Positions 4,708-60,900 of a stretch of 64,000 nt of DNA are shown one piece after another. Made by a program: the position numbers and the translations under genes. The notes beneath the pieces are model-generated. The model was given only the letters and a program-made list of their open reading frames with translations, was not told the origin of the DNA and searched no databases. The DNA is from Epiperipatus broadwayi (taxonomy: Eukaryota; Animalia; Onychophora), in assembly GCA_028023455.1 (NCBI GenBank), contig JAQFVV010000009.1, positions 13,764,001 to 13,828,000 on the forward strand. Reading direction: 5' to 3'. The first letter of the stretch is position 1; each line of letters opens with the position of its first letter.

Positions 4708-4714
4708 GAAGAAT

Positions 4715-4734
4715 TGGCGCCAAACATGTAGGGC
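4715..4734 (+). promoter_or_regulatory. Primer-binding site, tRNA-Lys-like
   Basis: TGGCGCCAAACATGTAGGGC 8 nt after the LTR end resembles the complement of the tRNA-Lys 3' end (TGGCGCCCAACGTGGGGC). Confidence 0.6.
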
Positions 4735-5223
4735 CTGATTCAACGCGTCCAGCATAGCAAAAAAAAAATTACATATATTAAAAATTAAATAAAAGGATTA
4801 GTTGGAGAGAGAGATGAGATGTTGTGTATATATATGAAGACCATATAAATGTAAAATGGTTGGAGGACTTCCAGTCAATTTGTTAGTTGATTTTGTTATT
4901 TAAGAAAAAGAGAAAAGGGCGATAACGGAGATGGAGATTTTTTTTTAATATTAGAATATATATTAAAGTTTTGTTTCGATTTGATTTGTTTCTTGTTGAG
5001 ATAAAATCACAGACATAGATAAAAATATAGAATAGCTAGAGCGTAGGTTGTAGGAGATAGATAAATGGTGAGTGGAATAGGATGGAGTTAGGTGCAGTTT
5101 CAAAAATTTTGTTATTGATAATAAGAGACATGTATTAATTGTATAAAATTGCGGCAAGGCAATTTAAGAGTATTTAATAAAAACAGGGTGTCTTACGTGT
5201 TGACAAAATCGTGCTCTAGAAAA

Positions 5224-6530
5224 ATGGAGCAATATCATATATGTGAAAAGGATGATACTGCAAATGGAGAAGCAGTGGAAAAAAAATTAGACAGAAAGGC
5301 AGGCATGAAATAGAAACAGGTAGTGATCAGCAAGAGGAGGAAAAACAAAGGAGAAAGTGAGGGCTTAATGGTAGTGGTGACCAAACTAATGAGTAATATA
5401 TCACAACAGATAAATGACATGAGGAGTGATATGTGACAAAAGATGAATGAGATGAAGGGTAGATCTGATAATTTGGCACAAAATATAGAGAAATATGTCA
5501 CACAAAAGATGAATGACATGAGGGATGATATAGCAAAGGATATGTCTCAAAAGCTGAATGACATGGATGAAATATCGCAAGAAATGGAAGCAAGGCTTCA
5601 AAGTATAGAGGAGATAGCAAGGAAAAATGAGATATGCAGGGACCTTTTTCAAAGCACCAGTAATAAGGTAGAAGAAGTAGAGACCAAGCAACAGTTAATG
5701 AAAGAAAAGTACAAGGACTTGTGACAAGATGTCAACCAAAAGATTGAAGAAGTGGTAAAAGGCTGTGTTGGCAAAATGAAAAAGCTGGAATAGCTGTTAG
5801 TAGAAAATGATAGTAAGATAGAAAGTTTACAGCAGAATTTCTGAGGCAGAATTTCTGAGAGTTGGTCAGCAAGATTGAGCAATATATGACTGAACCCCCA
5901 TTCATCAATGCCATTAAAGAGGAGCAGACTGCAAGGATGGACAAAATCGAGATCTGGGTGAGCAAAAACAAAGAAAGCATGACTAAAATCCATAGAACAA
6001 TAAATAAATTGGATGAAAAAGTTAAGGACCTCAACATAACAAAGAATGAGAAAGCAGTAGCAAAAGGGGGGGGGGGTAACAGAAGTAAAAGGAATAAAGG
6101 AATGGGAAGTTAAGGATGCTGCTAGCAAGACTAGTCAGGAGCATAGGGATCATGATATAGAAAAAAAAAGCTATTCTTGGGAGAATAAATTAGAGATAGG
6201 AAAGGATAGGTCCTCTCAGTCAAAGGTGAATCAGTTCCTAAAGATCAGAGTATTCCAGGGACAAACTGGGGAGACTTCCATAGAACAACTGAATAGCCTG
6301 GAAAAATATTTTCAGATAAACCGGATACCTGAACCAAGCAAGTTAGCCATTGCATGTAATCATCTACAAGAGGATGCACAGTCACGGTGAGACTCCTTAT
6401 TTCACTATCTGCCACATTTGAGGGCTACAGAGAAGCTCTGTTAAGATACTTCTGGAGTGAAGAGCACCAGGAGACCATGTTATACCAGATGATGCAGGAG
6501 AAGTACAAGACAAATGGGGGTGAATAATTT
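5224..6530 (+). pseudogene. gag: Decayed gypsy gag (N-terminal coiled coil plus capsid domain)
   Basis: ATG at 5224 is in frame with the 5443-5724 coiled-coil ORF but interrupted by stops. Later segments read LKIRVFQGQTGETSIEQLNSLEKYFQINRIPEPSKLAIACNHLQEDAQSR* and RYFWSEEHQETMLYQMMQEKY, matching the F.G...LE.YF...A...L...A..W...FWS...Q capsid pattern. Confidence 0.75.
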
Positions 6531-7625
6531 TTCCAAGTTCTTTAGATGGGCATGCTAAATGTGTGCAACACATCAGAGGATCAGATTGTGAGGATAATCT
6601 ACCTTTTCAGATTAAGCAGATATTATGGCCAATATAGAACCAGTGACAGAGCTTTTAAACACTGGATATAAGTCAGCAAGAACAACCACCTGATGAAGTT
6701 AGAGAGGACATAGGCATTAATGCTATGAGGTGGGGTAGGAATAGGACTACCTATATGAATGACCTTTTGGCATAGGAAGACCAGACCTAGAAGCCCCAGT
6801 CCAGTGCTATACATTGACCCTGTTGGAAATAAGATCGATGAACTGTTATACGGAGGAAGGGAAAGGAGCCCAGGCCACCTTTGCCTAGGTCAGCATGTAG
6901 TAAAAGCTAGTGTTAAGTGTAGAGAATAATTGGAGCCAGTCAGTCATGTCGTTTGATGGTTGGGGATGTGGACTTGTAGTTTTCCATGTATTATGTATAT
7001 GGGTTGGTCTGTGTTGGTATTTTTTTTACTCTAGTGTTGGAGATGATGAGAGTTCAGAGGGGTTGCTGGAGATCTCTGTGTAGTTAGGAATTTCTGTGGC
7101 ACTATGGCAAATTATATATTCGAACACAAAAAGGTGTATGGGAGTGATGATAAATTCCTGTATGACCAACACTTTGTGAAGCATACATGTTACGACAAAG
7201 GAAGCTGGCATGGTGCAGCTCTTGGTTAAGAGAGATACCCTTAATCTGAGAATGCAAAAGATCCTGTAAGCCTCCAATAAGAAATGAGCATGGATGCATT
7301 TACTTTATATTCATATTTTAATTACTTTGCATAGTTGTTGTAGGATTCTAGATAAAATAGGGATCTTTATGCCAATGCTCTGTGTCTCTTATTGTTTCTA
7401 TCTTGGGGATTGGGAAATGGTGTAGTCTTAGCCTGGCATTTTAATGCTTGGTGGATGAAGGTTTGCATCTCTGGCAGTTAGGTGTTATGTCTGTTGTATA
7501 CTAATGATTATGACAGAGGGAGAAATATAAATACATATGAATATTTTTATTTTTGTTGTCCTAGAGTTAAAGTGTAGTTGGCTAGTGAAGACATTAAATG
7601 GTTAATCCCATGTCAATGTCTTAAT

Positions 7626-7638
7626 AGAAATGGGGGGG
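7626..7638 (+). promoter_or_regulatory. Polypurine tract
   Basis: AGAAATGGGGGGG lies 3 nt before the TGTGACAGG start of the 3' LTR. Confidence 0.7.
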
Positions 7639-7641
7639 TAT

Positions 7642-10297
7642 TGTGACAGGCATTCTTGGAGTGACACACACAAGGTGGCTGTAGCTAAAGCTACAATTGA
7701 TTATATATAGAAAATATTAGAATTAATTATATATAGAAAATATTAGTGTGTATTAATTTAAATTATATTTTATCACTATTATAATAAGAAGTCTGGTACG
7801 AACTATATAAACGTATTGTGAAACGAATGATGATAGTCTGTATATATCTTACCCACACGCAAGAGTAAATTAAATATTCAAACTTATAATTTGTAATTTT
7901 ATGTGTGTTATAATTATATTGTATATGCGAGTAATATTTTTATGTATTATTTTTAACTGTTGCAAATATTTCACATTTGCAAATTTGTAAAAGTTTGTTT
8001 ATATGTTGGAACATATTTATAAAAAAGGGAATAATTAAAAATAATTGTAAATGGTCCAACCCATCTATATTTTTTAAGTTTATCAGATATGATGTCTGCT
8101 AATTTATTAAAGCAAAGTCAGGTTGCTATTGTTTTACCGAATGTTAAATTTTATTATTGTATTAATGGTCATCCTGCTTTGTATTTTATTTTTAAGAACA
8201 AGAGAGTCTGAGGCATTTAAATGCCAAGATCAGCAGAGAAAATCTTTTTATTTTTGATTTGTGTTTTTTAGTTTTGATCTTTTGTCTGGGAAAAGCGAGA
8301 GAAACTGTCTTTTGTGTCAAAAGTGAAAATTGATTAAATGGTACTCCTTAATCAATCAAGGTGGTCTGAATAAAAACCAAGATGAAAATTAAAGATAAAA
8401 TTTAAAGATTAGAATAAGTGATAGAAAATACTAAGGTATAAAAAGCTATATGCATAGTTCCAATCCCTTATCCACGAAGGTAGAGTTGGCTGCTGCAATA
8501 GTTCCAGGTGGGGTACTCAAATTCATAGGGTAATGAGTGTGCTATATAAACTGTTCACCATATGCTGAGGGCGGTTACTAATGTAGAATTGTAGAGAAAA
8601 GCATTAGTATAGAGAATAATTTAATACAGAAGGGTGAATAATATAGAATCGTAGAGAGAAGCATTAATGAAGAGAATAATCTAATAAAGAATGAGAGAAA
8701 TGTCATAAAGAACCATAGAGATTAATAATACTTCATCTGATATAGAAAAGACAAGCAAGGAGGTTTTTTTTTTGTGTGCTTACAGAAGTGTTGCATTGGT
8801 GCGCCAACTTCTGTTCATCTGGCTGATGATTGTTGTTAGCTATAAGCTGCAGAGACTGGTTAATAAGGCTATATCTCAGAGAGAGACACTGATCATCCAA
8901 TGTAAAAGAAATAAGCAAAAAAGGAACAGAGCTGAGCTTGGCTTCAAATCAGAATCCCACAAAAGCTATATAACAGAAGTGGCAATCTGCTGAAGCTGTC
9001 CTAAGAAAGAAAACATTGGTAGGAACCTAAAGAAAATGAAAATGTTACATTAGTCAGTGTGACGAACATGGAGTAGAAAGAAACCCATGTCTTGCACCAG
9101 TCTGACTCTTTCCAAGCTATCACTATATAGCTACTAATACCACCTGAGGAAGATGATCGCGCCCTATTGTCCAGTTGTGTAGTGCACTCAGAAACCCTGA
9201 AGTTCAGATGGAGAAGTCTGAAGATGCCGGATGGTATAATTTCTTTTATTCATTTATTATTTTATTTGAATATTATTTATATGCTTTAATTAAAAAAAAA
9301 AAAAAGGAATCTTAATTGATATATGTATTTTTGATACAATAGATGTATGTCGAGTTGTTTATCCACAAAGTGCGGGATTGTTTCATATGAAACCATCCTA
9401 CCAAATTAGGTTTAAATTGCCTTGATATATGTACGTGTTTTCTTTCATTTTGTTATTGCTTATAGCACTTATATGTGTATAGCATAAAGAAATGTAAATT
9501 GATTTAAATTATAGTTTTGCTTTTGTCTCTACATGTGCTTATTTATATACAAATGCACTTCTTATAAAATGTTTAAATTGTGGAATGTTAGGCGTAAATA
9601 GACATATGTGTATAACAATATTTTTTGATATTATATACATGGGTAGGTCGAAGTTCAAAACATTTCACTCAAGGGTATTTATATGAAAATAAGAGAGGGA
9701 GTTCCATATCTAAATTGAATATTGTTCTTAATATTCTTTTCATATTATATTGCTGGGGGGTTCAGAGAATGAATTTTTCTTTATGTATATAAATGGTGAC
9801 GTGTTGTTATGTCTTCACAAGTGCCTCATTTATTTTTTTCCCCAATAATACTAAATACATTTTAATCCACCAGTAGCCTGAAATAATTATTGGGAAGTTA
9901 GAATTTTGCTGTCATGCGGATATCTTTCTTTATTTGGTTAATTCATATGTTTCGTTGGTAGTTGTATGTCCTTTCAGGAGGAGTTTTCTCTTTCTGGAAG
10001 TGAGCACATAAAGGCCAGGTTCAAATTCGCCTTTCGAAGGTATGCGACGGCCAATGCACTGATATCCATAGGCAGGGCAATAGAGTTTTAACAAGGTACA
10101 GATCAGTAAATATAACCAACATTGGTTTGATCTCTCTCATTTAAAAAATTCAATAGGTTAACTTTAAGGTATCATATACAGAGTTTATTATTGAATTTGT
10201 AATGATGCTGTACTCTGATGCATGACAGTCATTTCATGTTCGGTTTTGTGTGCATGGTAAGAATTCACAGGGTGTAGGGGAAGCATTGACCGATACA
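7642..10297 (+). repeat. 3' LTR, complete, about 2.65 kb, TG...CA
   Basis: Starts TGTGAC after the PPT and ends cgataCA at the point where similarity to the 5' LTR stops. Confidence 0.85.
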
Positions 10298-11002
10298 GTA
10301 TGTATGCATGTATTTACTGTCACAATTGCTAGGTAAAACTTTCAAAAAAAAATTGCATTTCAGTCAAGTTCAGGATTTGTTTGTTTGGTGCATGTTGAGG
10401 GGAGAGATAATCAACACAACTGATTATCAAATATTTATCAGTAAATAGGTATCTAACTAAGAATAAACAAAAATGGAAAACACAACTTTGTCAACAAACA
10501 ATTATTAATCATGGTTAGTATAACCTTCTCCACTATTTCTCTAAGAATAAGCTTTTGAAAAAGCTTTTATCTGTAGTTTTTTTTTCTTTTTATCTATATA
10601 TGTGTCAATATGTTATTTATGGATAGCTTAATTTTTTACAGGAATTAAGTTAGTTAATCTAAATTTTTGTAAATATAACTGCAATATTTTTTTTTATATT
10701 TATTAAAAAACAAAAGAAAAATAATTTTACTGTGAAATATATTATATAATTTTTTTAAAATGAATTTTAGTATTTAAAAAAAAAAAGATCTCTATATTAA
10801 TTCCTATTTGTTCTTTCTGCATAAATCCAATTTTTAATTCAGGAGGAACAAGAAACTAATATATTTATACATTTAGCATTTAATATTCATTAACATAGAG
10901 GCTAAACTTTCCATACAGTAGCTCCACTCAGTGCAAGCCAGAGTACTCAATGGATGAACAAAGGTTTTTGCATCAAATCCCTATCTAGTACCTACTTATC
11001 CA

Positions 11003-12662
11003 TGGAGATGAGTAGGAATTCAGGTAGATCGTTATATATGAGTTTTATAGGTGTAGAGAAAGCATATGATAGAGTAATGGTAAGGTTAGCCAATTTGGGT
11101 ATGGATGAAGCTTTAGTAAATATTATTAAGAAATTATATGAAAATAATTATTATACTTACCAGTTAGGGGATATAGAATCAGTTAAAGTTAAAAATGGGG
11201 TGGGATTAAGGCAAGGATGCCCTATATCACCTATTTTTTTGTTGTTGTTTTTGAGTGAAATGGAGAAAGCAATAGAAAGACTAGGAAGAGGGGTAGAGAT
11301 ACCATTAATAGGTGGCAAGGGAGTATATATTTTGTCGGATCTTTTTTTTTTTGCAGATGATATCTTTTTGTGTGCAGAAAGAAGAGAAGATATGGAAATT
11401 ATGTTGAGGACATGTGCAAGGGTGGGTAAAGAGATGGGGATTAAATTTTGTGAAGAAAAATCAAATATAACGATGGTTAATACTAGGGAAAGAGAAGATG
11501 TAGAATTTTTATTGGGGGATATAAAGTTAAGTGTGGTGGATAGATATATGTATTTGGGAATCATCTTATGTAATCAGGAAAATTGCTTGGATGAATGGGA
11601 GAAAAAAATGATAAATGAAGCAAAGAAAAGAAAGGGTTTGATAAAGAAACTAAGAGTATTTTCATATAATAAATATGATGTAGCTAGAATAGTATGGAAG
11701 GGAGTTGCAGTAGCAGGGTTAACATATGGTAATGATGCATTATGTGTTAGTAAAAGGGTTTTAGATTATTTAGAGAAAGTACAAAGGGAAGTAGGAAGAC
11801 ATGCATTAGATGCAGAGATGTGGACAGCAAAGGAGGCAATTCAAGGAGAAATGGGATGGTCAAGTTTTTATATGAGAGATGCAAAAAGTAAAATGCAAAT
11901 GTTTGGTAGGTTGCAGTTTATGGATAGTAAAGGAATAGCAAAAATAGTGTTCAATTGGGTTATGAGTAAAGGGCAGGTAACAAGATGAGTGAGAAAGGTA
12001 ATGCGGTATGTGGAAGATTTGGATAAAGAATTTATATCAGTATACTTGTATAAAAGGTGGGATGATTGTGTTAGTAGGATTGTTGAGTGTTATAGTGGTA
12101 AGGAATGTGATAAAAGAATAGAAGCATTAATAAAAAATAGGGAGTTGGAGAGATGGAGAACTAATATGGAAGGTAAGAAGAGTTTAAATATATATAGAAG
12201 TAAACGGAATATTGGATGCGAGTTAATTTATGATAATAGTAAGGAAAGTAGTTTATTATTTAAGGCTCGAACATGATCTTTAGCAACAAGAGAATATACA
12301 TGTAAATGGAAAATCATGGATAATTTAGGGTGCTGATTGTGTAAGGAAGGTATAGAAAAATATTAGGCACCTGTTGATTGAATGTAAATGCTTGAAAGCA
12401 GAAAGGATATAGATAATGAAGTTGAGGATAGACATGAACAAAGTGACTATACAGAAAGTGAGTTATTAGTTTTTATGTTGGGTTTGCGAAGAGATAAGGG
12501 GGATTTAGATATAAAGGCCATAGAGTTGACAAAGTTTATGTTGTGGAAATGGGATGGGGCAGAATATGGGAAGACTTAAGAGTGGGGAATGGAGAATAAA
12601 ATGGCTAACAGGTTTATCTGGGCATAATTGCTGAGATATTCGTGACTTCGTTTAAGGAGAAG
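11003..12662 (+). mobile_element. 5'-truncated non-LTR retrotransposon (LINE): RT, thumb and C-terminal CCHC knuckle, pseudogenised; clade possibly RTE-X-like
   Basis: RT motifs FIGVEKAYDRV, GLRQGCPISP, FFADDI and YMYLGI. In-frame stops at 11986 and 12274. A frameshifted C-x2-C...H-LLIE-C motif lies near 12330-12385. Clade assignment is from memory and uncertain. Confidence 0.9.
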
Positions 12663-12663
12663 C

Positions 12664-12712
12664 CAAATAGACTAGTTTCTACCTCTTGGCTTTCATCAGT
12701 GAGGAGCCTTGG
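12664..12712 (-). ncRNA. Hammerhead motif with intact core and disrupted stem I
   Basis: Minus strand reads TCCAAGGCTCCTCA-CTGATGA-A-AGC-CAAGA-GGT-A-GAAA-CTAGTC-TATTTGG. Confidence 0.55.
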
Positions 12713-15474
12713 ATCTGAGAGCACTGCACCTAGATCTTAGAATCTAATGCAACCATCCAGCAGCCACCTTTTTTTGGGTCCAAAATGAAAACACAATAAT
12801 GTTTTCAATTCAAGCTCATTAGCTTATATAGTTGTATAGATCTGAACTCAATTCAGCATCCATACTTTTTGGTGACTTTGGTTCTTTAATAATCACAGTC
12901 ACCATAATCCTATTGGCAGGATTGGTATTAAAGGACTAAACATCACATCATCACCATTCTTTACACTCGCACAAGCTGTTTACACACAGGCTAGGGATTT
13001 TATGCCTTCTTGCATCCATTTATTACTCTGGCTTGCAATATAGAGAGTTTAGCTTCTGTGTAAACAACTTGTGCAAGCATAAAGAATAATCGTCATATAA
13101 TATTCATTAATAAATAGATCATATTTATTTTTTTATTAAATGACAACAAATTTAGTAAGTGAAATTAATAATAAACAATCATAGCAAGATTATTAAGTAA
13201 AAAATATTGGAATTGCTAATTCATTCTTTTTTTATAACTTTTTATTAATTAAGTTCTTTTTATTTCAAATGATTTGAATATTTTTTTATGTGATTTGAAT
13301 ATAGACTGCTTTCAAAACACTAAGAATATTCTACATATTATCTTTTGAATTGGAAAGAATATTGCAAAAATGATTTTGTTTGTGCTTTTAATTATTTTAA
13401 GCTGTTAACTTTACCATTGTATTTTTCTACCTATTTTATTAAAATGCTATAAATTTAAACCATTGACATAAAAATGATTAATAAAGGTAGATTAATACAT
13501 AAATCTGTTCAACAGTGGGTTTTATTTCAAATGACTGCTTTTTTTTTATTATTATAACATTCATTGGTGCTATTGTATAATATGAATAAACATCTATGGT
13601 CAACCAATTATTTTTAAACATTGTCATAAAACTCATCTATTAATTAAGTTAAATGCTTTTACTAAATTATTAAAAACAGTTTATAAATTATATTTGTGGC
13701 CATAATATTTTTCTTGCATTTACTTTAAAAAAAAAAGTGTATCTGAAATGTTTTTTATAACTACAATTATCATTATTTAGTGTCTATTGTGCATTTAAAT
13801 ATATATATATATATGGGGGGGGGGGGCAATAGCTTTATATTAAATGCTGCCACCCAAAACAAATTCTTATAATACAATACAGATATATTTTTGAGACCAG
13901 ATCATCAGTTTAGTTAAGATGAGAACACATTTTTTACAAAGAACATATAAGTAGTAATGCTATATGTACTATCTATTTTGAAAATGTGGTGAATATCAAT
14001 ACAAACAATACTTTATGTAGTAAATCTCCTAATATATTGCACAACAGAGACCTATTTCATCATTTTGTTTAAAATTACCTGGATACATTTTTATCAATCT
14101 TACTTAAAATATATTTATTATAGAAAAAGGAAGTAAAATATGTTTATACTAAGAAATACATGGAGGAAAAAAAACATTGTTTCATTAAATCTTTAAGAAT
14201 TTACACCTTGCAAGTGTTTGAGCTGTAAGAAAACTTCCAGCTATGAAAACGATCTTTCGAAACCTGACAAGATTGTTTACATTGATGATTTATTGTTGCA
14301 TATCATTTCTTTTAATAGTTTATATTATTTAATTATATCAATTCATATTTTAAATATATTTTAATATACATTTAATTGTAATATTGTAGAAGGAACTATT
14401 CTTGACACATGCACTAAAATTGACACACATTGTTTTAAAATCATAATACATTAAACAAAATAATTATTTAAATTTAATTAGTCTAATAATTATATCAAAC
14501 CATTTAGAATATATAGTTTCAGTTATTTCTTGATAATTATAGATTAGCATAATTTAAATAATTAATTTGTTGTTTAGTATATATATTTACTGTAAAATCA
14601 GCATAATAGAAAGTTCTTAAAAATTTTGTTTGAAATTAAATAATAATTTGAAATTTTATATATATAATTAAATTTATTTTTTATTTGAATGTTACATCAG
14701 ATTTTTATATTTATAATATATAATTTCTCATATATTAATTTCTTTGCATAAGTTTCTGTATATATGTATTTATATATATAAATGTTGGACTTATTTTAAT
14801 ATTCTTTCTAAGTTTTGAGTGTAAATGACAATTGAAAAGGTTTACAGCAATTATTGACTTTGTATAGATGCTTACTGAAGTATAGATTAAGTTGATGAAG
14901 ATCATATCTTTAAATTAAGAACTTTAATTATAAGCAATATTAGATAAATTTAGTTGTGACTGTTGCTAACAATTTCAGAGCTTGAATTTTTCATAAATCT
15001 ACTAGTAAGAATTATTACATTATTATTTTTTGAAAAAGTATTGAAAAATAATATAAAAGATCAAAGTTGATATTTTTTTAATATTAATGAATACAATATC
15101 AGACATTAAAGAAAACATTTGGCAGCTAGCTCTTGATATTTTCTAACCTCCTTTTAAATAATCTATAAAATTATCAAAAACTATAATAATTATATTAAAG
15201 TTAATGCTTAAAAAAATAAAAAATTAAACTGTCAAATAGAAATTTTAAAAATGTAAACATGTTCAAATCAAAGAATTTTATTTTAAAATCACTTTATGAT
15301 AAATAAATATTTTACTAAAATTATCCTGGTTTTTTTTTTTAAAAAAAAAAAGAATGGTTGTGTATTAATGGTTTTTATTTGACCTATGTAATCTGATCTT
15401 TCTAAACACTTTATGTTTATGTGACACTTAGATTAAATACACATTTAAGAAGACATAATAGTATATCCATTTGC

Positions 15475-19972: not shown

Positions 19973-22449
19973 GTAAGAATATTTTATATTTTATTCTTGA
20001 ATTTTCTCATTTGTACTGATGCTTTTATTTTATTTTATATCATTGTTCAAAAAAAAGATTTTAACAAAAAATTAAGAAGTTACAAAGAGTATTTCCAGAA
20101 AGAGAAAAACATTGATTATATAAAGACAAATCTGTACACAGAATAAACATATTATCTTGTAAATAAGTGAATAAATTAGAATAAATGAGGGGAAATGTAG
20201 ATATTTTATAATGTCTTTTCCGAGTATGTGTCTAGAACAAATTATAAATAAATATTATCTACTAAATAAAGATAGAAACATATCTGTTAGGTTTAAAAAA
20301 ATAATAGATACTATTAGAAAATGTTAAAAAAGTAAAAACATCCAATTGTTAATGGTAATTCAAATTGATGTAGAAAGTTAATTAAAGAGAACTAAATTAA
20401 AAGGTAGAGATTATGTTAGTCAAACTACACTTTTAAGTTATCATCATCATCATCTCGTAGCCAATATGCTCAAGTTAAATATAGAACTTTTTGTATTAGA
20501 GATTCAAAAATTATAGTGAAACGTTATTCTATATAAGCTATGGTAGAAAGTATAACTCATTCTAGCATTCTTGAAGATAACTATTTATATTAAACACAAT
20601 GAATAATATCTTATTCAAATTTTTAGTTGTTACTAACTTCAGACTATCATCATGCTAACAGAAATAGAAAAAAAAAATATTACAAGATTGTGTCCAAGCA
20701 ATTGGTTATATGATTGCTTTTGTTCTATGTAGTTTAATACAGTAGTAGAAATTTAGACCCAAAACTTAAAGATCTCTAGATTAATTTTAAAATCGAAAAA
20801 TCTTCTAGTGCATTATATTATATTACTTCCAAGTAACATGAATATTTCTCATAGTTATATTTGATTTTGTCCTCCATATTCACAGCTCAATTAATTATTA
20901 TTTATCATATTCGTTTTTTCTGATAGATGGTGATGTTTGAATACTAAAGTTCCAGGCTGACTAACAATTCCATCCTATTAGCTAAGCAGTTTTTTTTTTT
21001 TGTTTTTCTTATCTGGGAATCAATACAGGATATGTTGGATTTCAAGGTTATCGCTCATCACTGAACTAGTCTGTGGACAGTGATTAACTAGTTATTATTC
21101 TAGACAAAAACTTAATTGAACCAAATAGAAAACAAATAAAGTCTGCAATAATAATTTAAGCATTAATTGACATAAAAATAAATATCATAAAAACTATGCT
21201 AACTTTGAGCAGCCTTGAATATTCATTAATTTTTAAATATCAGTTTAAATTACTAATTTGACATAATTTTTATAGCATGATTTTAGCTGAAAATGAATCT
21301 GCTAAATGTAAAAATATTTGCAATATTCATATTACTATACATACATGTTATAATAAAATTCCATCTATCATCAGCATAATGTGTGTATAGATAAATTATC
21401 ATTTATCTGAATATTATAAATGAAGGCATTTTGTAGAAATAGACAAAGCTTATAAATATTATTTAGCTTTCTAGTCAAGAATTTAATAAAGTTTCATTTT
21501 TTTTCAATACATAAATTTTGAATGAAATATTGTTGTCCACTATTGAAGAACTTCATTGTACAGTAGTTAAAACATCAGCCTGCCATAATCACAAACTGAG
21601 TGAGTTAATCTTGGAAATTTTTTCAAGTGTAACATTTTTCCTTCAGGTCATTATTCCTCAACTATTTCATGGATAATAATAAAATTAACATAAAGATTTT
21701 TTTTTCTTAATATGGTATTTATAGTTTTACTAATGCAAGTTGATTTTCCACATGAATAAGCATTTATCATTAGATTTTTTTAAGTTGATATCTTAAAAGA
21801 TTTTTTTAAGTTTCAATTCAGTGAATAACTAGATAGCACTTTTTGACCATTATGAATTCTTTAACATATTTAAACTTTATCATTAGAAGAATATAACTTC
21901 GTAAATCATGTAAACTTTTTGATTTGCATCCTATTTCAATGTTCAAAAATTTATTATGCCTTAATGGATTTATTTTACTTCAAATAAGAAACGAAAACAT
22001 TTAGTCCTTTTATTGATATCTTAAATCAGTTTGAATATTTTAAGTAATTTATGAATAATAATAATAAATTAATGATAGCTATCTTGTTACTGTATTAAGA
22101 ATAATAATTTACTGTTTTCCCAGAGTTATCTATTATATGCTTGAATATTCAAGGGAGACTAGATTTGTAGAACATGCCCAACCTAGTTTCTAGCTATTGT
22201 TTTTTTTTTTTTTTAAATTGAACTTCCTCATCTTCAATCGTCTTTGTTTCTATTATACTATCCATGTTAAGGATCTGAAATTTTAAGATTTTGAACCAAA
22301 CAACTTTTTTGTATTGTTATATGTCTTATATTTAGGAGAAATTATGTTTTGTTTTAAATCTATGTATTCATAAAAGCAAGTTGATTTAGGTTCAATATTT
22401 TAAGAGTTGGGTGTGTAGATATAATGCAGAAATTTAGATGTGGCATTAC

Positions 22450-25400
22450 TGTAGCAGTCGATCTTAGCCCAAGATCGAGCTCCACTGTTCTACCACTTAA
22501 CCCACTGGTTTTTTCGTCATATTTATATAAACTAGTATATTTCTGAGAAGCGTCTATAAAAGTTTATAAATATAAATCTCAAATAAATATTTTCTTTAAT
22601 TTTAAACATTGACTTTTATGAATGTGACTCAGATATATACATATATTAACGGAGCTTTTATATATATAAAAGCACAAACAAATCTTTTAAATAATTTTGT
22701 ATTTTTATTCTTAATTATATGTCATTTGTTTTATAAATATTTTCTTCATATAAGTACACAAAATATTCAAGATGGAAGATGGCTGTCCAAGAATAATTAA
22801 AGGGGTGGGATTCATGATTTTAAAAAGAATTTTTTAACTAAAGTTAATGAAAGTAAAATTTAAAAACAAAGCTAATTGATTTTAATTAGAGATTAACATT
22901 TTTTATCAAATCTATTTCCAATCTGGAAATTGATTTGAAATTATTTTTGGACAATTATCTAACGATTCCATCTCCACTACCAATAGCTAAAATATTTCTG
23001 TTAATTGAAGATAAGTTTTAATTAAAAAAACATTATTTGAACACCTTAGAGTTTTGTATAAATAGGGCCAAAAATTTATTGTGCCAGAGAGAGAGAGAGA
23101 GTTAGGTCAATAGTCTTTAAACGACTTGCTGTCTGTGTAATTTTTGAGGGGCTTCAGAGGCCTTCCTCTCCGTCTTCGGCTCCAATCTTCGCCGTGCATG
23201 ATGTAGCTTCTACAATTCAAGTGTTCCCGTGCCGTCCAAGAACCGCCGAGGCCAAGAGACATGTCAAAGAATGCCGTCTGCCATACAAAATTTGTCTGTA
23301 TTCCCTAGAATGCTCAGGTAACCAGCCCAAAGTCATTATAATCATATTACCTAAATTATAATTTGTAAACTCTCTTTAAATTAATGTTTTCTGTATATTT
23401 AATCTCTTTAACTCGCTCATCGGCGAGTACATTAAAACTAATAATTATTTCTTTTCTTTATATCGATTCTCTATAACATAAATTAATGCTACTATAAAAC
23501 ACTTCGTTCAACTCACGCTTCTTGCTTTCTTTTATAAATTAGTGCGGTTATAATTTACTTTAACTGATATTTTTATATTTTTCACTAAACTTTTATTTTT
23601 AAATGCAAATCAAACCCGGTTTTACGAACTAAAGGGGTGGGGGTAATGACTTCTTATTTATTTATTTCTAAATAGTTCGTAAGTCTGAGTTTTTCTTGTA
23701 AAATGAATATATGTTTTTTTCATTTAAAATATTATACCGTAAAATTATACCAAATGTATAAATATTTTTCAATCTGGGATGGATTTTGGTATACGTTAGT
23801 TTTATTAAGTTCTTTATTCATCAGCATCGCCAAAAAGACTGGTGAACAAATTCTATTTTGTTGTTCGCACTTTTAAGTGCACAAATTTTAGTTTATATAT
23901 GTTAAACAAAATAATGATTCAAGAAAGGGGAGAAATGTAAACTTCATCAATTGTAGTTTTAACTTTTAATCAATGATTTTATCTCACAGGGATCATTATT
24001 TTAACATGTCATTACGTATTTGTTAAACTATTTAAGGCTTTATATTTAGTCTTTAAGTCCAATGATTTTATATTATAATAGTGTTGTTAGCATAGGCCAC
24101 TCTTCATGTTAAGCTTTATCTAGAGACATGCGTCAGAACGCCCGAGTCGTCTCATCTTCGTTTCAGGTCGTAAACAGGTCGATGAATGTCCCTAGACCAC
24201 ATCTATATATATATACTCGCGTAACGAGAGCAATGCATGGGATAATTCCGACAAAGTTCGGCCCAGTGCATCTCCGTCCGAGGACCTTTTGTCAACCGAT
24301 TCCACAAAATGTAGGGTGGCAAGTCGGCTAGACTGTTTTTCTTCCATAATACGATAAAGCACCTCCAAATATTGGATCCGCAAATATTTGGCTATTATGC
24401 TAACACCGCAGTTTCCCTATAGTTCGTTTTTCTTTTAGCCTGTTTGACAAAATAAAACTAATGATATGTAATAATGAAACGTTTTCTCTTTGTAATATTT
24501 TTAGTTGGAGTTTAAATCCAACCTCTCATGAAGCTGCCCTCCCCTTTATTGAATAAGCCATTCGCCGTATTAACAAAGTTTCGCTATATTCTTATTCTTA
24601 AATGTCGAAAATGTAAAATAAATAAATGTTTTTAAGTATATTTTGATCACAAAGTATACTCATTTTAGTGTTGTAAATAAAGTTCATAAATGAAAATATG
24701 TATCCAATGCCAAGGGCATTATATTCAAGTCCTATAATCAGCGAAACTCTTATTATTATATTTTTACATCTATTTCTAAATGTATAAACGTCTACCAGTC
24801 ATCCAGATAAATTTATTTTTGTACATTGAATAAAATCCTATTTGAAATATACGTCAGTATTGTAATCGCCGCACTAAATTGATATCTATTGAAATAAAAT
24901 AATTGTAAAAGATCATCAAATATTTGTAACCAAAATTAAAGTTTTAAATGCGTGAGTTGAATCTAAATAAAATCTTGAATTTTTGTCAAAATAAATATTT
25001 ATATATTTTTAAACTTAATTCAGTTGTTCGAATCTCCTTAATATTTATATTTATGTATTTTAAACTTAATATCTTGGGTTCACTCGATCCTCATCATCAT
25101 CATCAGCTGAGTCTTATGCAAAACGATGTAGCACCGGGCCCAGAAATAATTAATTTATGTGGTATCACCGTAGAGTGTTGTCTGTAGTGTTATAGATTTG
25201 GGGAATGGGCAAATAGGTTAGAATTCATGATTGCTCCTGAACCTGTGTATCTCGGGCATGATTGGATTCGGGGTACTTTTGCTTAGATTCCAAATCTTGT
25301 TGAATGGACATACATTTTCGACTGGTACAGTAGATTTTTTTTTCTTGGATTTTTTTTTTTTTAAGTTTAAAATAACACCTGTCAGCAAATTTATATGAGG

Positions 25401-28400
25401 GCGCCAGCTGACAAGGTCCCACAGAATGTACAAGTAAAAGCTGGGTCACTCAACTCTCACCTACAAGAAATACATATTTTGTAAGAATTGTCTTACTTTA
25501 AAAAAATGTGTTGATGATTACAATCTTTTTTTACATATATATACTACATTTTTATATACATATGACATTTAATAATTATATTACTGGATGTATAAACTTG
25601 AGAGAGAAAGATTACAATGAAAGAGCATACAAACTCGGGGGGTAAAAAAATCTTACATATATATTATTCATTATTATTTAAAATAGAAGGAAAAAAAAAC
25701 ATTATATGTACATATTAAATGCTCTACAGGGTATTGCAGGGTGTGGGAATTTCAAATAGTTCCACAGATGGGCGTCCAAATCCAAGAAAAAAAAAATCTA
25801 CTGTACCAGTCGAAAATGTATGTTCATTCAACAAGATTTAGAATCTAAGCAAAAGTACCCCGAATCCAATCATGCCCGAGATACACAGGTCAGAAGCAAT
25901 CATGAATTCTAACCTATTTGCCCATTCTCCAAATCTATAACACTACGGACAACACTCTACGGTGATACCACATAAATTAATTATTTCTGGGCCTGGTGCT
26001 ACATCGTTTTGCATGAGACTCACCTGATGATGATGATGAGAGATCGAGTGAACCCAAGATATTAAGTTTAAAATACATAAATATAAATATTAAGGAGATT
26101 CGAACAACTGAATTAAGTTTAAAAATATATAAACATTTATTTTGACAAACATTCTAGATTTTATATATATTCAACTTCACGCATTTAAAACTTTAATTTT
26201 GGTTACAAATATTTGATGATCTTTTTACAATTATTTTATTTCAATAGATATCAATTTAGTGCGGCGGTTACGATACTGACGTATATTTCAAATAGGATTT
26301 TATTCAATGTACAAAAATAAATTTATCTGGGTGATTGGTAGACGTTTATACATTTAGAAATACATGTAAAAATATAATAATAAGAGTTTCGCTGATTATA
26401 GGACTTGAATATAATGCCCTTGGCATTGGATACATATTTTCATTTATGAACTTTATTTACAACACTAAAATGAGTATACTTTGTGATCAAAATATACTTA
26501 AAAATATTTATTTATTTTACATTTTCGACATTTAAGAATAAGAATATAGCGAAACTTTGTTAATACGGGGAATGGCTTATTCAATAAAGGGGAGGGCAGC
26601 TTCATGAGAGGTTGGATTTAAACTCCAACTAAAAATATTACAAAGAGAAAACGTTTCATTATTACATATCATTAGTTTTATTTTGTCAAACAGGCTAAAA
26701 GAAAAACGAACTATAGGGAAACTGCGGTGTTAGCATAATAGCCAAATATTTGCGGATCCAATATTTGGAGGTGCTTTATCGTATTACGGAAGAAAAACAG
26801 TCTAGCCGACTTGCCACCCCACATTTTGTGGAATCGGTTGACAAAAGGTCCTCGGACGGAGATGCACTGGGCTGAACTTTGTCGGAATGATCCCATGCAT
26901 TGCTCTCGTTACGCGAGTATATATATAGATGTGGTCTAGGGACATTCATTGCCCTGTTTACGACCTGAAACGAAGATGAGACGACTCGGGCGTTCTGACG
27001 CATGTCTCTAGATAAAGCTTAACATGAAGAGTGGCCTATGCTAACAATGCTATTATAATATAAAATCATTGGACTTAAAGACTAAATATAAAGCCTTAAA
27101 TAGTTTAACAAATACGTAATGACATGTTAAAATAATGACCCGTGTGAGATAAAATCATTGATTAAAAGTTAAAACTACAATTGATGAAGTTTACATTTCT
27201 CCCCTTTCTTGAATCATTATTTTGTTTAACATATATAAACTAAAATTTGTGCACTTAAAAGTGCGAACAACAAAATAGAATTTGTTCACCAGTCTTTTTG
27301 GCGATGCTGATGAATAAAGAACTTAATAAAACTAACGTATACCAAAATCCATCCCAGATTGAAAAATATTTGTACATTTGGTATAATTTTACGGTATAAT
27401 ATTTTAAATGAAAAAAAACATATATTCATTTTACAAGAAAAACTCAGACTTACGAACTATTTAGAAATAAATAAATAAGAAGTCATTACCCCCCCCCCTT
27501 TTAGTTCATAAAACCAGGTTTGATTTGCATTTAAAAATAAAAGTTTAGTGAAAAATATAAAAATATCAGTTAAAGTAAATTATAACCGCACTAATTTATA
27601 AAAGAAAGCAAGAAGCGTGAGTTGAACGAAGTGTTTTATAGTAGCATTAATTTATGTTATAGAGAATCGATATAAAGAAAAGAAATAATTATTAGTTTTA
27701 ATGTACTCGCCGATGAGTGAGTTAAAGAGATTAAATATACAGAAAACATTAATTTAAAGAGAGTTTACAAGTTATAATTTAGGTAATACGATTATAATGA
27801 CTTTGGGCTGGTTACCTCAGCATTCTAGGAAATACAGATAAATTTTGTATGGCAGACGGCATTCTTTGACATGTCTCTTGGTCTCGGCGGTTTTTGGACG
27901 GCATGGGAACACTTGAATTGTAGGAGCTACATCATGCACGGCGAAGATTGGAGCCGAAGATGGAGAGGAAGGCCTCTGAAGCCCCTCAAAAATTACACAG
28001 ACAGCAAGTCGTTTAAAGACTATTGACCTAACTCTTTCTCTCTCTCTCTCTGGCACAATAAATTTTTGGCCCTATTTATACAAAACTCTAAGGTGTTCAA
28101 AGAACTGTTTTTTTAATTAAAACTTATCTTCAATTAACAGAAATATTTTAGCTATGGTTAGTGGAGATGGAATCGTTAGATAATTGTCCAAAAATAATTT
28201 CAAATCAATTTCCAGATTGGAAATAGATTTGATAAAAAATGTTAATCTCTAATTAAAATCAATTAGCTTTGTTTTTAAATTTTACTTTCATTAACTTTAG
28301 TTAAAAAATTCTTTTTAAAATCATGAATCCCACCCCTTTAATTATTCTTGGACAGCCATCTTCCATCTTGAATATTTTGTGTACTTATATGAAGAAAATA

Positions 28401-28688
28401 TTTATAAAACAAATGACATATAATTAAGAATAAAAATACAAAATTATTTAAAAGATTTGTTTGTGCTTTTATATATATAAAAGCTCCGTTAATATATGTA
28501 TATATCTGAGTCGCATTCATAAAAGTCAATGTTTAAACTTAAAGAAATTTTTTATTTGAGATTTATATTTATAAACTTTTATAGACGCTTCTCAGAAATA
28601 TACTAGTTTATATAAATATGACGAAAAAACCAGTGGGTTAAGTGGTAGAACAGTGGAGCTCGATCTTGGGCTAAGATCGACTGCTACA
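22450..28688. mobile_element. Giant foldback element, Ginger-like termini, no transposase ORF
   Basis: Arms 22450-25352 and 25778-28688 are reverse complements around a 425-bp spacer. Termini are TGTAGCAGTCGATC...GATCGACTGCTACA. TTAC is duplicated at 22446-22449 and 28689-28692. Confidence 0.9.
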
Positions 28689-29762
28689 TTACCAATAAGT
28701 GTCCATTGATTACTCAAATTTACAACAGATGGCTCTAGAGTAGATTGAAATAAGTTATTACTTTTTATTGATAAAAAATGAAAAATCATACAATCTTAGT
28801 AAGTTCATTGAAAATGAAGCTGACGTTGTGATGTGTCTAATTCTGAAAATGTCTTTGGTCCAAGATTTTAATTGTCATGAAAGAATATTAGTAATCAACA
28901 ATGTAAAGCAGATAAATAATAAAAAATTATTTTTGTCTATACAAAAATAACTTTTCTAATAAGTTTTCTAAATTAAAAAGTTACTATAATAGCCATGTTA
29001 GCAAACGTAGCTCTACTCTTGTCTGTGTCTTGCAAAATGTAGATATCCACAACTATTTCCAATGATTTCATTGTAAATAAAATGATTTTAATTAATTTAT
29101 GGAATCTCAAAAAAAAAAATATTATATTTACAAATCTTAACAAACACTAATTGCCAGTCCTGGAAATATTCGCCATTACTTTTGAGTTAGGATTTAGCTT
29201 TATTTTTAAAATATAACCTTGAAATCATTATAATACATGATATCGTAATTCCTGTATTACTTTAAGCTCCATTGTTGGCAAAATTATTATGGTTTAAAAT
29301 AAGAGCCAATTTTTACAGGTAGAATAATATTTATTCTTTCCAGTAAAATTTTCTTGGACATCATAAATTAATGATTTTTCCATATAAATTTGATATTAAT
29401 TTTTTTAACCATTTTTTATAAAATACACTTTTTGAATGCTTAATTGCAACCGAACACAACCTTTACCAAAGTGATATTTGGTAGAATGGTTTAACTTTAT
29501 CCAATTTGTGGTGGTAAAAATGCTATTGATTCAAAATCCAGCATTAGTTCTAATAATTTATCTGAAAAATTGACAAAGAAATTAGAAATTTTGCCCTATT
29601 TAAAAAATCATTTAAATTTTTATATAAATTCTTCACAGATATTTATTATATTGAAGGCCATATTGTCAGTTAAATAGTTGATTGTATAATATTGTAATAT
29701 TTGATTGAATAAAGCACAATACACTACTTTAAATGACAAAGATTTACGTGTGTATATATATA

Positions 29763-29968
29763 AAATCATAAAAACCAGTTAACACTTAGACAATCCCAAT
29801 AACAATCAACAATTTCTAACTGTTGTCATGGCAATCTCCTTTTAATAATAAGGGTGAAATTCTACCTGTTATTAATAGTCTAATATACTGTACTTATATA
29901 GACACTAAAGATTGCAACTAGATCACAGAGATTGAAATTATTGATACAAAGAAGTTTAAATAAACCTC
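29763..29968 (-). repeat. Partial inverted copy of the 34599-35415 repeat (family Z)
   Basis: gattgcaactagatcacagagattgaaattattgatacaaagaagtttaaataaacctc is the reverse complement of the start of the 34599 unit. Confidence 0.75.
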
Positions 29969-32900
29969 TTTATGCATATATGCAGCAATACTTTTCAAAA
30001 CAAATTTTGCCATAGACTATTAAAAATATTTTCTTTCTAAATTTAGATAAGTAAAAAATTATGTAAAAATCTATGGACATTAGACAGTAATTTTGGATGT
30101 GAATATAGCATCTCCATCTAAAATCCATTGACTACTCTTTTAATAAATTAATAGGCTGAAGTACTGTTTCTAAGACTATTATATATATATATTACCAACG
30201 TCAATATAGATTGAGGAAATGTCAAATAAAAATCAGAAATCTTACTCATTATTAAAAAAATAGTAACCTGTTTTGTTTTTTTTTAACGATTTTGAATTTT
30301 GTTAGTTGTCATAATCACAGATTATAATCTTTGAATTCTTGTCTGACAATTAAAAAACGTCTCAGAATTCAACCTTTTCTTTCATATAAATTTAAATAAT
30401 AGTTTGAATAAATAATTTGTAAGGAATTATATATATATATATAAAGAATATAAATTATTCTTTATAAATTATTTATTCAAAACTTTTATCAATTGAGTTA
30501 TTTACTTAATAGCAATGCCTAAAAAAAATCATAATTTTGATTCTGATAATCAAATTGTTGGGAAACTTTTCAGAGATCTATATTTACTAGTTGGTGTATA
30601 ATTTATTTTTAGAAAGAATATACATATATTTTGAATATTTATTTAAATACTTACTCATTTAACTCAATACATTTGCCTATACATTAGTCATTGAAAAATT
30701 GGCTAAGAACAGAGTATAAATATCTTATTGGCCATTGCAAATAATTTTTTTTATATTAGAAATAACTTATGACTATAATTTCTCTGCCTAAAAGCAGATA
30801 GAAATAACTAGACTAAAGAATATCTCAACTTTTGTAGGTATTAGTTTGTCCTTGCTATTCTTTCACACTGTTCTGGTATCTCAATATTTGGAGCTAGCTA
30901 CATTACAAACATTCTACATCATTAAGATGTATATTTACCTTAATATCACAAAACAATAAATAAATATATACATTTTTTATCAAAGTTTATAGTATATATC
31001 AACTGCCAAAGCTATGGATTTTAATACATGATATTTATTTAAGTTTAGATTATTTTTTTATAATTCAATTATTTAGAAATAATTTAGTAAATAACTTTTA
31101 TATCTATCTAAATTCAAGTTATATATATTTCATGAATGTGCTCTTTTTTAATATTATAATAATATATTATTTAAAAAGAGGGTATATATTATATAATGTA
31201 AATTTTTGGAAAACAATATAAACTCAATGCTTTTTACATTTAAAAAGCAGATAGGTGCTCTGTATGTTCAAGAAAGTAATTCTTTTTCTACACTATTTTA
31301 AACATATTTTAATGATTTTAATTAGTGGATCATGATTTGCTTTAGATATTATACCATCAAGAACATTCTTTGTCCCTGAATATTGTATAAATTACTTAAA
31401 GATGTGAATGAACAATGTTTTAGGGATTTATTTGTATATCTCTTTAACAAAAGTCTTTTTGGTTTATTTAGCCATTTATAGCTTTATCCTACTTCATTAA
31501 CTATCCTCTTCAAAATTTTCTTTATTAACAGATAGTAGAGAGTGACTTTTGGCTTTAGATTTTCTTCAGATCAGAAGTCATTAAAAATTTGGCCATTGAT
31601 ATTTCAGACAAAATTATGGGAAATTATGACTATGTAATTTTACTACTCTATTGTATTTTGCAAGTTTAGAATACTTTTAAAAATTATTAACAAAATATGC
31701 ATTGATAACTATATATTAAAAGTATTGTGCTATAGTAATTAGCACACTTATCTGCCACACACACAATCTGAGATTCAAATCCTAGTAAAATAAGATTTTT
31801 TTTTTGATATTTCATATAAGTTTAAGATTATTTGTAGTTGTTGTGCCCAAGTCAGCCAGTTATTGGCTAATAAACTGGTGTCTAGCTTTTCTCAGCTATA
31901 GGATAAAACAAAGAATATATATATATATTGTAAAAGATGGCTTACAACCAATCTTCACACCTGTCCCAATTTATTTTTCACAATGTTTGAATTCAGACCA
32001 AGTGGTAGGCAAATAATTTATCCTACATACCTGCTTATATACATATAGTATATATATAAACCTACATATAAATTGATATTTTTGAGAAATGAATTCTTTT
32101 TTTTTTTTTATCTATTGTGAGAAAGCAAACAAATTCATTATATACAGGAAGTATATATGTATATAAACTAATATGTTTGTCTATTTGTAGAAGTTAATTG
32201 TTTTTCTTTTATTCATTTAATATCATTAACTAAAATACTAATGAATTGACTTATAGAACCAACATAATCAAAGATCAAAATTATATGTGGTCAAAATTGT
32301 TGATAGATGATCGAATTTGGAATAATGAAGATTAAATAATAATAATAATAATGTTTTATAATTTGTTTTTTTTTATTAAGTTGTAACAATAGGTTTTAGC
32401 TGGCATGATAAAAAGTAGCGTTCTTCACTTGAAAACTAACCATTGAACCGATAGCACATAAGTAAAACCTTTTGCGTCTAAAAACAGTAAAGTTTTAATA
32501 TCTGTATTTTCAAGCAAATATAAAATCTTTATTTTGGATAGTAGGAAAATTGAAATTTAAACTTTAATTTATAATTACCAGGAATGAACTAATGACATAA
32601 TTTATTCTGCAAGCTGGAAATTATTATTATAGAAATCATAAAAAAAAAACCTGAAAATATTAGAAGTTAATTGTTTTTTCAAGCCATTTTCATATATTTG
32701 TTAGAGCTACAGTATAATTAATAGTGATTGATAAAATGGTCATTACAATGAGTCAGGGATAAAAGACCAGTGCTGTAGGACTTTCCAAAGCTAGCTTCGA
32801 TGTCATTATGAAATTATCCATCAAGATGTCTATTTAAAGAACGCTAGTGTACGTCAATCTTCCATGGATTTATATACATTCATGAGAGATATTTCGTATG

Positions 32901-59400: not shown

Positions 59401-59804
59401 TTTTTAGTTTATATATCATAATATAAATATTTAAAAAATCATTCACACACTCATTCATTCTGCATTCAAGAATACAACTGATATTTCAGTTAAGAACTGT
59501 CAGGTAACAGAGAAAAATATATGATGTTTTTTGGTCTTAAACTCAAAAGTAAAAATAAACACTTCATGTTGACTGATGCATGTTAATAATCATTCATGGT
59601 TGATTAGCATATGAATAATTACATAGCAATAACAGCTGTGGTGGTAAGGTTATATGGATTGGGCATTAGAAATTTGCCCTGCTTGCATCCTTTAAGGAAT
59701 GATAGTTTACAATTAAACTGCTTTGTGTAGCATTGACTATTCTAAAATGTGATTGTTAGGATGGAAAAGTTTATGTCTATATATAATTAAAACTCATCAT
59801 AACC

Positions 59805-60900
59805 AACCCCTTTCCTTTTCTCCCCCTCCTCCCCCGCCCCCCCCCCCCTCTCCCTCCCCCCCTTGGGGTCCCGCCGGGGGTGGCGCCGGGGTGCCCGGGG
59901 GGTTTCCTCCGGGCGGGGGCCCCCGGGCTCGGCCTCGCTCGGTTTGGTTTCCCTGTGGGTTCCCGGCTCGCTTTTGATCGGCGGCGGGGCCGTGTGGTGC
60001 CTGGGTTCTCCCCCTGCTTGTTCGGGTGGTGGTCCGAGGGGCCGGGAAAAGGCGCGGGGGCCCCCCACGCCCCGGGGGGGGGGGCCGGGGGGCGGCCCTG
60101 CGCTCCCGGCCCCTCTTTCCCGGGGTCCGGGGGCCCCGTGGGTTGGTGCGGGGGGCCCTTGCGGTGTTCGCTGGTCCTTCCGCCCCGGGCGGTTGCCCCC
60201 CGGCCCGCCGCGGGGGTGTCTCCCCCCCCTCAACTCCTCGGGGCCCTTTTTGTAGTCGGTCTGGGGGCCGTGCCCCTTTCCAGGGCGTCTTGCGCGGCCC
60301 CCCTTCTCCCCCGCGTGCCCCCCCGCCCTTGCCCCCGGCGGGTTGGCGGCCCCCTTGGGGGGGGCGGTCGGGCGCCTCCAAGGGGACCCCCATAAGGGCT
60401 CGGTTTCTTCGGCTTGGGGGGGCAAAGCCCCCGCCCCCTCCCCGGCCCCCCCCTTCGGGTTCTTGGTCCCCTCTCCCGCTTTGGGGTGGGGCGGCAAAGT
60501 TCGGCCCCCTTTCTTCTGTTGGGCCCACCCGGGGGCCAAATCTTTGCCCTCCGGGCTTTGTCTTTTTTACCCGCCCCGCCTTTGCGTGTTCTTATTTGGG
60601 GGGCGCGTGTCTCGCCAGGACCCCCGTACCTCCGTGTTGCCCCTTCCCGAATTTCCTGGGCCTCCTTTTCCCGCCCCGGGTGGCCTCGGTTTTTGCACGG
60701 GAAGGGGGGGGGTGGGTCTCTCTGTGTTTGCCCTTATATCCCCCTCCCTTGGTCCCCGCCTTTCCCTTTACGGGCCCCTTTGTTCTAGCCTGCGGGCGGG
60801 TAGGGGTTGGGCGGCGTTTATCTTCCAGGGGGAAAGGAAGTTGTTCTTGGGGGAAGCCGAAAATATTCAAGGGGGAAACTTCGATTTGCTTCTTGTTACG
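59805..60900. other. Extreme GC-rich, A-poor low-complexity block, probably low-quality sequence
   Basis: Abrupt switch from AT-rich DNA to G/C homopolymer runs, with whole 60-nt lines almost lacking A. Overlapping G/P/R-rich ORFs occur in all frames without recognisable motifs. Confidence 0.6.

Follow-up and report, generated by a model that had tools for sequence, protein, structure and literature searches.

A foldback element composed of two inverted long terminal repeats in the genome of the onychophoran Epiperipatus broadwayi

Comparison with described elements

The long inverted arms of the Drosophila Foldback (FB) element are built of tandem subrepeats, and its target-site duplication (TSD) is 9 bp in length. 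Large retrotransposon derivatives (LARDs), which in miniature form are known as TRIMs (terminal-repeat retrotransposons in miniature), were defined in cereals. Classical autointegration of retroviral or retrotransposon cDNA gives rise to circles without free long terminal repeat (LTR) ends, and the maize locus Mu killer, which derives from a DNA transposon, silences its own family. Ginger2 DNA transposons have TGTNR ends and generate 4-bp TSDs in RTATAY targets, and the terminal inverted repeats (TIRs) of Ginger1 and Ginger2 measure 40-270 bp; TGTNR ends and a 4-bp TSD are common to the Gypsy LTRs as well (PMC2836005). DIRS retroelements (PMC3950715, PMC7192593) normally possess inverted repeats, an internal complementary region and a tyrosine recombinase, and are not flanked by a TSD. 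Here we describe an element of 6239 bp with long inverted arms, located in a 64,000-nucleotide window (the whole stretch of DNA that was analysed) of the Epiperipatus broadwayi genome (assembly GCA_028023455.1, contig JAQFVV010000009.1, positions 13,764,001 to 13,828,000 of the forward strand). Both arms are complete copies of the LTR of an abundant retrotransposon family, and the foldback element represents an ordinary LTR-retrotransposon insertion in an unusual structural form.

Ordinary copies of this family resemble LARDs in their direct LTRs, TG...CA ends with short inverted tips, putative primer binding site (PBS), polypurine tract, fixed 4-bp TSD, non-coding interior, very high copy number and many solo LTRs. 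They differ from LARDs in that the host is an AT-rich animal genome and the PBS is separated from the integrated LTR end by 21-23 nt, and the window copy differs further because its two LTRs are inverted, with U3 outward on both. In being a retroelement bounded by inverted long terminal repeats the window copy is similar to DIRS, although the normal form of the family has direct LTRs and 4-bp TSDs and contains no open reading frame (ORF). As in FB, long inverted arms without an ORF make up most of the element, but no tandem subrepeats were detected in the arms when Tandem Repeats Finder was run over window positions 20000-31000, and the TSD is 4 bp. The TGTNR termini, the 4-bp TSD, a target that is AT-rich as in Ginger2 and the integrase-type insertion chemistry that these features imply are shared with Ginger1 and Ginger2. 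However, TIRs are present in every Ginger copy, whereas here the arm is an independent LTR and the two-arm form is unique, and the PBS and polypurine tract of ordinary copies mean that an RNA intermediate is used. Rearranged retroviral and retrotransposon cDNAs provide another parallel, as these by-products of reverse transcription also contain inverted segments, and a second inverted pair described below is joined at an integrase-type CA end; in contrast to autointegration products, the molecule considered here appears to have kept two usable U3 tips and to have become integrated in the chromosome with a normal TSD. The likeness to Mu killer consists in a long inverted duplication of the promoter-bearing end of an abundant element, from which hairpin RNA could in principle be made. 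A limited search of the open-access literature, which is not proof of absence, yielded no description of an inverted LTR insertion that has U3 outward on both sides and is flanked by a TSD.

Structure of the foldback element and its LTR family

The element extends from position 22450 to position 28688 of the window, on contig C9 of an assembly of 5.6 Gb with a GC content of about 25%. A repeat search of the window returned a chain of inverted-repeat blocks, 92-100% complementary, that pairs 22447-25343 with 25788-28691, and the exact ends were then placed by direct reading. At the left edge GCATTAC is followed by TGTAGCAGTCG, and at the right edge the plus strand reads CGACTGCTACA followed by TTACCAAT, such that the termini are TGTAG and CTACA and the same four bases, TTAC, occupy 22446..22449 on the left and 28689..28692 on the right. 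A duplication of 5 bp would not match the flanking bases (ATTAC versus TTACC). The arms, together with a short tail of 22-23 nt that they share, account for about 93% of the 6239 bp, and no ORF longer than 79 amino acids is present inside the element. An earlier note, made from the letters of the sequence, had claimed a 6.2-kb foldback structure with these ends and this 4-bp TSD, 93% of it inverted repeat and devoid of a transposase ORF, and our repeat search and direct reading agree with it in each of these respects. A hairpin with an 8-bp stem (TCGATCTT, loop AGCCC, AAGATCGA) is located 8 nt from the U3 tip of the LTR, at 22457-22477 and 28661-28681, and is kept in most copies of the family. 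By eye the U3 tip looks faintly tRNA-like, without support from ARAGORN or Rfam, which identified no tRNA and no Rfam family in the window.

The left arm (22450..25329, plus strand) is a complete LTR of 2880 bp, TGTAGCAGTCGA...TCGACTGGTACA, and the right arm (25802..28688, minus strand), which is likewise complete and is a 5' LTR by context, is 97.75% identical to it. The two LTR copies therefore face each other, and both outer ends of the element are U3 tips. Inward of the left arm there is a 22-nt post-LTR tail (25330..25351, plus strand) consisting of GTAGA, nine T residues and CTTGGATT; the same tail follows the right arm and the 5' LTRs at loci L005, L010, L012, L029 and L035 (loci sampled elsewhere in the assembly are denoted by L numbers), and in ordinary copies it fills the gap between the 5' LTR and the PBS. 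The left tail ends within 1 nt of the PBS boundary and is succeeded by a run of 11 T residues at the centre junction (25352..25362), which is missing at this place in the reference interior (L035:8404-10000). The first T may be a PBS position, and the run itself may represent filler, microhomology or the copy of an A-tail. Beyond it the sequence continues as inverted leader, the internal region downstream of the PBS as far as internal position ~430-440 (25363..25758, minus strand), which was recognised from its match to L035; window positions 25366-25782 are 89.5% identical to L035 internal positions 424-20. This is followed by a decayed PBS of the tRNA-Lys1,2 type, TGGACGCCCATCTGTGGAAC on the minus strand (25759..25778), of which the best-kept family copy is found in L005, and then by the 23-nt tail of the right arm (25779..25801, minus strand). 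The centre is thus asymmetric, as the right arm retains 439 nt of leader and interior and the left arm only its tail and the T run. A 151-bp probe spanning the centre junction matched only the window in a search of the genome, the remaining matches covering the leader half alone, and other palindromic copies, which the earlier note had suggested looking for, were not found with this centre junction.

Searched against the assembly, the left arm aligns over its full length with many loci at 85-95% identity (more than 5500 first-look candidates), and its termini are kept in nearly all copies. At 19 of 19 solo LTRs with readable ends this free-standing unit is flanked by its own perfect 4-bp TSD; 18 of these were tabulated by script and one (L028) was read by eye from its flanks. 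The duplicated sequences are ATAT (nine cases), ATAC (four, in addition to L028, which is also ATAC), GTAT (two) and CTAT, GTAC and ATAA (one each), and family target sites accordingly follow the pattern NTAN, with a palindromic TA core and ATAT dominant. In ordinary copies the LTRs are direct repeats; the 5' LTR is followed by a PBS, and the interior between the two measures 1.0-1.6 kb. For example, the 5' LTR of L035 is followed by a 1.6-kb interior and by the 3' LTR of L017, and L039/L022 and L041 are organised alike; the occurrence of the arm as direct LTRs elsewhere, which had been put forward as a check on the element, is thereby established. The polypurine tract AAGTGGGGAAGTG directly abuts the TGTAG of the 3' LTR in L017, L018, L022 and L040. 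Since the arm exists as free-standing copies with 4-bp TSDs and as direct repeats around an interior with a PBS and a polypurine tract, it is an LTR.

The best-kept PBS, TGGCGCCCAACTTGGGGC in L005, agrees at 17 of 18 positions with the tRNA-Lys1,2 PBS quoted in PMC8775094, a comparison made with the published site and not with the tRNA-Lys of the host itself; ARAGORN detected no tRNA-Lys gene in 39 loci that could be used for this purpose. The PBS of this family starts 21-23 nt past the integrated LTR end, as judged from the two tails in the window copy (25330-25351 and 25779-25801) and from L005, L010, L012, L029 and L035. This offset is unusually long, and judging from it the unintegrated cDNA should carry a tail of ~22 nt that is lost at integration. 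Family interiors contain no ORF of at least 110 amino acids, and the ORFs downstream of the variant 5' LTRs of L010 and L012 have no gag or pol match in Pfam. On these features the family is a high-copy, apparently non-autonomous, LARD-like LTR retrotransposon, and its TGT...ACA ends, 4-bp TSD at NTAY and tRNA-Lys PBS point to a partner of the Gypsy type.

Nested and adjacent copies of the family are common, and some of the sampled loci depart from the usual arrangement. The solo LTR at L011:1501-4373 has unlike flanks (TGAT to the left, ATAT to the right), as would result if two different elements had recombined. Three sets of loci on different contigs (L010/L012, L004/L013 and L015/L019) have both the LTR and its flanks in common and are segmental duplications or uncollapsed haplotigs, and the identity between L031 and L033 is 97.9% across 10 kb. 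Past the PBS, L010 and L012 have an interior that bears no relationship to the one usual in the family.

Alignment of the two arms over 2880 bp revealed 52 substitutions (34 transitions and 18 transversions) and 9 small indels, corresponding to a Kimura two-parameter distance (K2P) of 0.018. Fifteen of the 52 substitutions fall at CpG sites, and when the changes are polarised on the nearest other copy as outgroup, each arm has acquired 26. In the segment 23041-23340 there are 8 substitutions (7 transitions and 1 transversion) and a 4-nt (GA)n indel, which reproduces exactly the count that had been made there previously by reading. The substitutions are somewhat clumped, and one stretch of 355 bp is free of differences. 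A maximum-likelihood tree of 33 LTR copies groups the arms as exclusive sisters (support 100/100) on a shared stem of 0.015, each tip measuring 0.01. Because transitions prevail, CpG sites are over-represented and the changes are divided 26/26, the pattern of differences is, on the alignment, that of germ-line decay and not of read error, and it appears as would be expected of sequences that were identical at insertion and decayed independently afterwards. The LTR pairs of ordinary elements are older (K2P 0.050 for L035/L017 and ~0.03 for L039/L022). Depending on the mutation rate, the insertion is probably a few million years old, given K/2 = 0.009 per arm.

A second inverted pair of sister LTRs was encountered at L040:1504-8281 (contig C12764:179305-186082). 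Here ATAC is followed in order by a 5' LTR, a complete interior, the polypurine tract, nucleotides 1-62 of U3, a full reversed LTR that is joined at its exact ...GGTACA (CA) end, and ATGC. The two full LTRs are 98.3% identical (K2P 0.017), each is ~93% identical to the window LTR, and the junction is single in the genome. A simple nested insertion was rejected as an explanation for L040, as the host LTR never resumes past the inverted LTR and a GGTT duplication is absent. Two more samples of 40 scored matches each, obtained with divergent LTR queries, contained no further inverted pair, which places the frequency of inverted sister pairs at about 2 of 85 loci.

Origin of the inverted pair

The explanation we favour, to which we would assign a probability of roughly 70%, is that the foldback element arose from one aberrant cDNA with two U3 ends, which integrated once and was unable to replicate further. 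We infer the order of events in the particle and the action of integrase as follows. Reverse transcription in the particle would have generated a DNA with U3 at both ends, either because the nascent plus-sense strand, ~440 nt into the leader, switched from its template to the plus strand of an LTR-only DNA and was extended backwards along it, or because two DNA fragments of one particle were joined at their inner ends. In the window and in L040 alike, the LTR-only arm would be bounded by natural DNA ends of reverse transcription. Its outer boundary, nucleotide 1 of U3, would represent the start of plus-strand DNA at the polypurine tract; its inner boundary in the window would be the unprocessed end at the PBS boundary, where minus-strand DNA starts, and in L040 the CA end exposed by integrase. 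The inner junctions of both lie at T/A runs. Speculatively, the T run in the window could be a non-templated addition or the copy of an A-tail on a transcript that ended prematurely; a TATAAA sequence is present ~27 nt upstream on the minus strand. The U3 and U5 tips of the LTR differ at only 1 of 12 bases, and integrase should therefore accept two U3 tips, in which case the two-U3 molecule would have been inserted in one concerted step to give the 4-bp TSD. The resulting palindrome has not been copied and would represent a dead end incapable of further retrotransposition, because it has no sense-oriented 3' R/U5 region. The earlier note had offered as its second option an LTR-type end duplicated by foldback and then moved, as a unit whose two ends are identical, by an integrase; the inverted duplicate of an LTR-type end and its insertion by integrase as such a unit fit the reading given here, whereas the element appears to have inserted once and no further mobilisation was seen.

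Several considerations weigh against this reading. Independent copies could have come to resemble sisters through gene conversion, given that the inverted repeats lie close together, the T run could have arisen from later slippage, and the position of the breakpoint at the PBS boundary may be due in part to T/A microhomology instead of the primer site. The copy-back and two-fragment routes are inseparable by sequence. The left flank of the foldback element is single-copy in the assembly, and the structure is known here from the assembly alone; no empty-site paralogue of the locus was found, the short repeat in the right flank stopping short of the site. The duplication that flanks L040 is mismatched once (ATAC versus ATGC), and ~85 loci were sampled among the thousands present. 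Finally, neither an autonomous partner nor an integrase gene was found by Pfam analysis of the L010 and L012 ORFs or by tblastn with the reverse transcriptase ORF of the window, which retrieved only unrelated retroelement remnants. Separately, the first 60-80 bp of the right flank (28698-28760) are a short dispersed repeat with 400 first-look candidates.

The alternative that survives best, albeit an unlikely one, is that two members of the family inserted independently and tail to tail near each other, and that both 3' parts and the intervening DNA were subsequently deleted, the identity of the arms being due to gene conversion or to near-simultaneous insertion and the TTAC match to chance. 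Members of the family are present in very large numbers, often nested or next to one another, and the palindromic TA core within NTAN renders a chance match far likelier than 1/256; the clumping of the substitutions between the arms and the 355-bp stretch without differences would also be in keeping with such a history. However, TTAC is a rare type of target, given that T is the first base in none of the 19 sampled TSDs and A the last base in just one, and GTAA is rare in the sample too, so that from the TSD counts we estimate at about 1% the chance that two independent insertions would produce TTAC and, on the opposite strand, GTAA. The arms are moreover exclusive sisters with equal tips and an even division of changes, the deletion would have to end within 1 nt of the PBS boundary, and L040 is not explicable by a simple nested insertion. 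The rare TSD, the sister relationship of the arms and the breakpoint at the PBS boundary together lead us to favour a single integration. A nested insertion later reduced to a solo LTR was rejected on structural grounds.

It is also conceivable, though distinctly improbable, that an element of normal structure inserted at TTAC and afterwards became a palindrome through rearrangement in place, by fold-back repair of a break or by a template switch during replication. Palindromes are known to arise by fold-back inversion at breaks, and the homopolymer run in which the centre junction lies is favourable to template switching. Fold-back copying in the chromosome would, however, have reverse-copied the flank as well, and the two flanks are not reverse complements of each other. 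An inverted 3' LTR would retain the polypurine tract beside it in place of the post-LTR tail, and recombination between inverted LTRs merely flips the DNA between them and cannot set a U3 tip at the old duplication.

An assembly artefact, in the form of a chimeric or fold-back long read or of two haplotypes of one LTR misjoined in orientation, appears very improbable. Fold-back chimeras are known in long-read libraries, yet the 52 differences between the arms are CpG-biased, rich in transitions and symmetric, the centre is asymmetric (22 nt against 439 nt), both outer joints lie exactly at the LTR tip and are accompanied by the duplication, and a like structure occurs at a second locus on another contig. 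The first option of the earlier note, a giant non-autonomous Ginger-like cut-and-paste transposon, is scarcely credible: the TGTAG ends, 4-bp TSD and AT-rich target do resemble Ginger2, but such ends and TSDs are found in Gypsy LTRs as well and hence do not discriminate, the arm overwhelmingly occurs singly with its own TSDs or as a direct repeat with a PBS and polypurine tract, 2.9 kb is far outside the described range of TIR lengths, and no other copy has the two-arm structure with this junction. Neither the window element nor 110 kb of sequence surrounding related copies was seen to contain a transposase ORF, a genome-wide search not having been made.

The surrounding window and implications for the family

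Elsewhere in the window, a 344-residue ORF with a reverse transcriptase domain (RVT_1, E value 5.6e-14) is encoded on the plus strand at 10954-11988, inside a 10-kb block (4000-14000) whose GC skew is strongly positive. The ORF is left over from another retroelement, of which a copy with 78-84% identity is present in L037. Positions 59800-61000 form an island of 47% GC within a region of 25% GC, where C-rich low-complexity repeats are present and long ORFs overlap on the two strands; searches of this island against Pfam and Rfam returned no match.

Identification of the arms as LTRs removes a false lead, as the element is neither a giant Ginger nor a foldback transposon, and it documents at base level what is probably a rare by-product of LTR-retrotransposon replication, namely a two-U3 molecule integrated with a normal TSD. 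Two independent cases in one genome suggest that two identical ends are usable by integrase in vivo. An untrimmed cDNA end seems to survive on the left arm, and this bears on the end processing of this family given the gap of 21-23 nt between LTR and PBS. For annotation, structure-based tools will miscall inverted LTR pairs of this kind as TIR elements. In addition, long inverted LTR pairs could give rise to hairpin RNA directed against an abundant family and could act as fragile sites. It is tempting, if doubtful, to speculate that the family regularly leaks two-U3 cDNAs, that the 2.9-kb inverted pairs derived from them, with their promoter-bearing U3, are transcribed into long hairpin RNA and might seed small-RNA silencing of thousands of copies, as Mu killer does for MuDR, and that the 22-nt tail could be the fossil of an unprocessed cDNA end. 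If this were true, the insertions would be evidence from nature that two identical ends are acceptable to a Gypsy-type integrase, and the tail of the left arm would show that ~22 nt are trimmed before integration in this LTR family.

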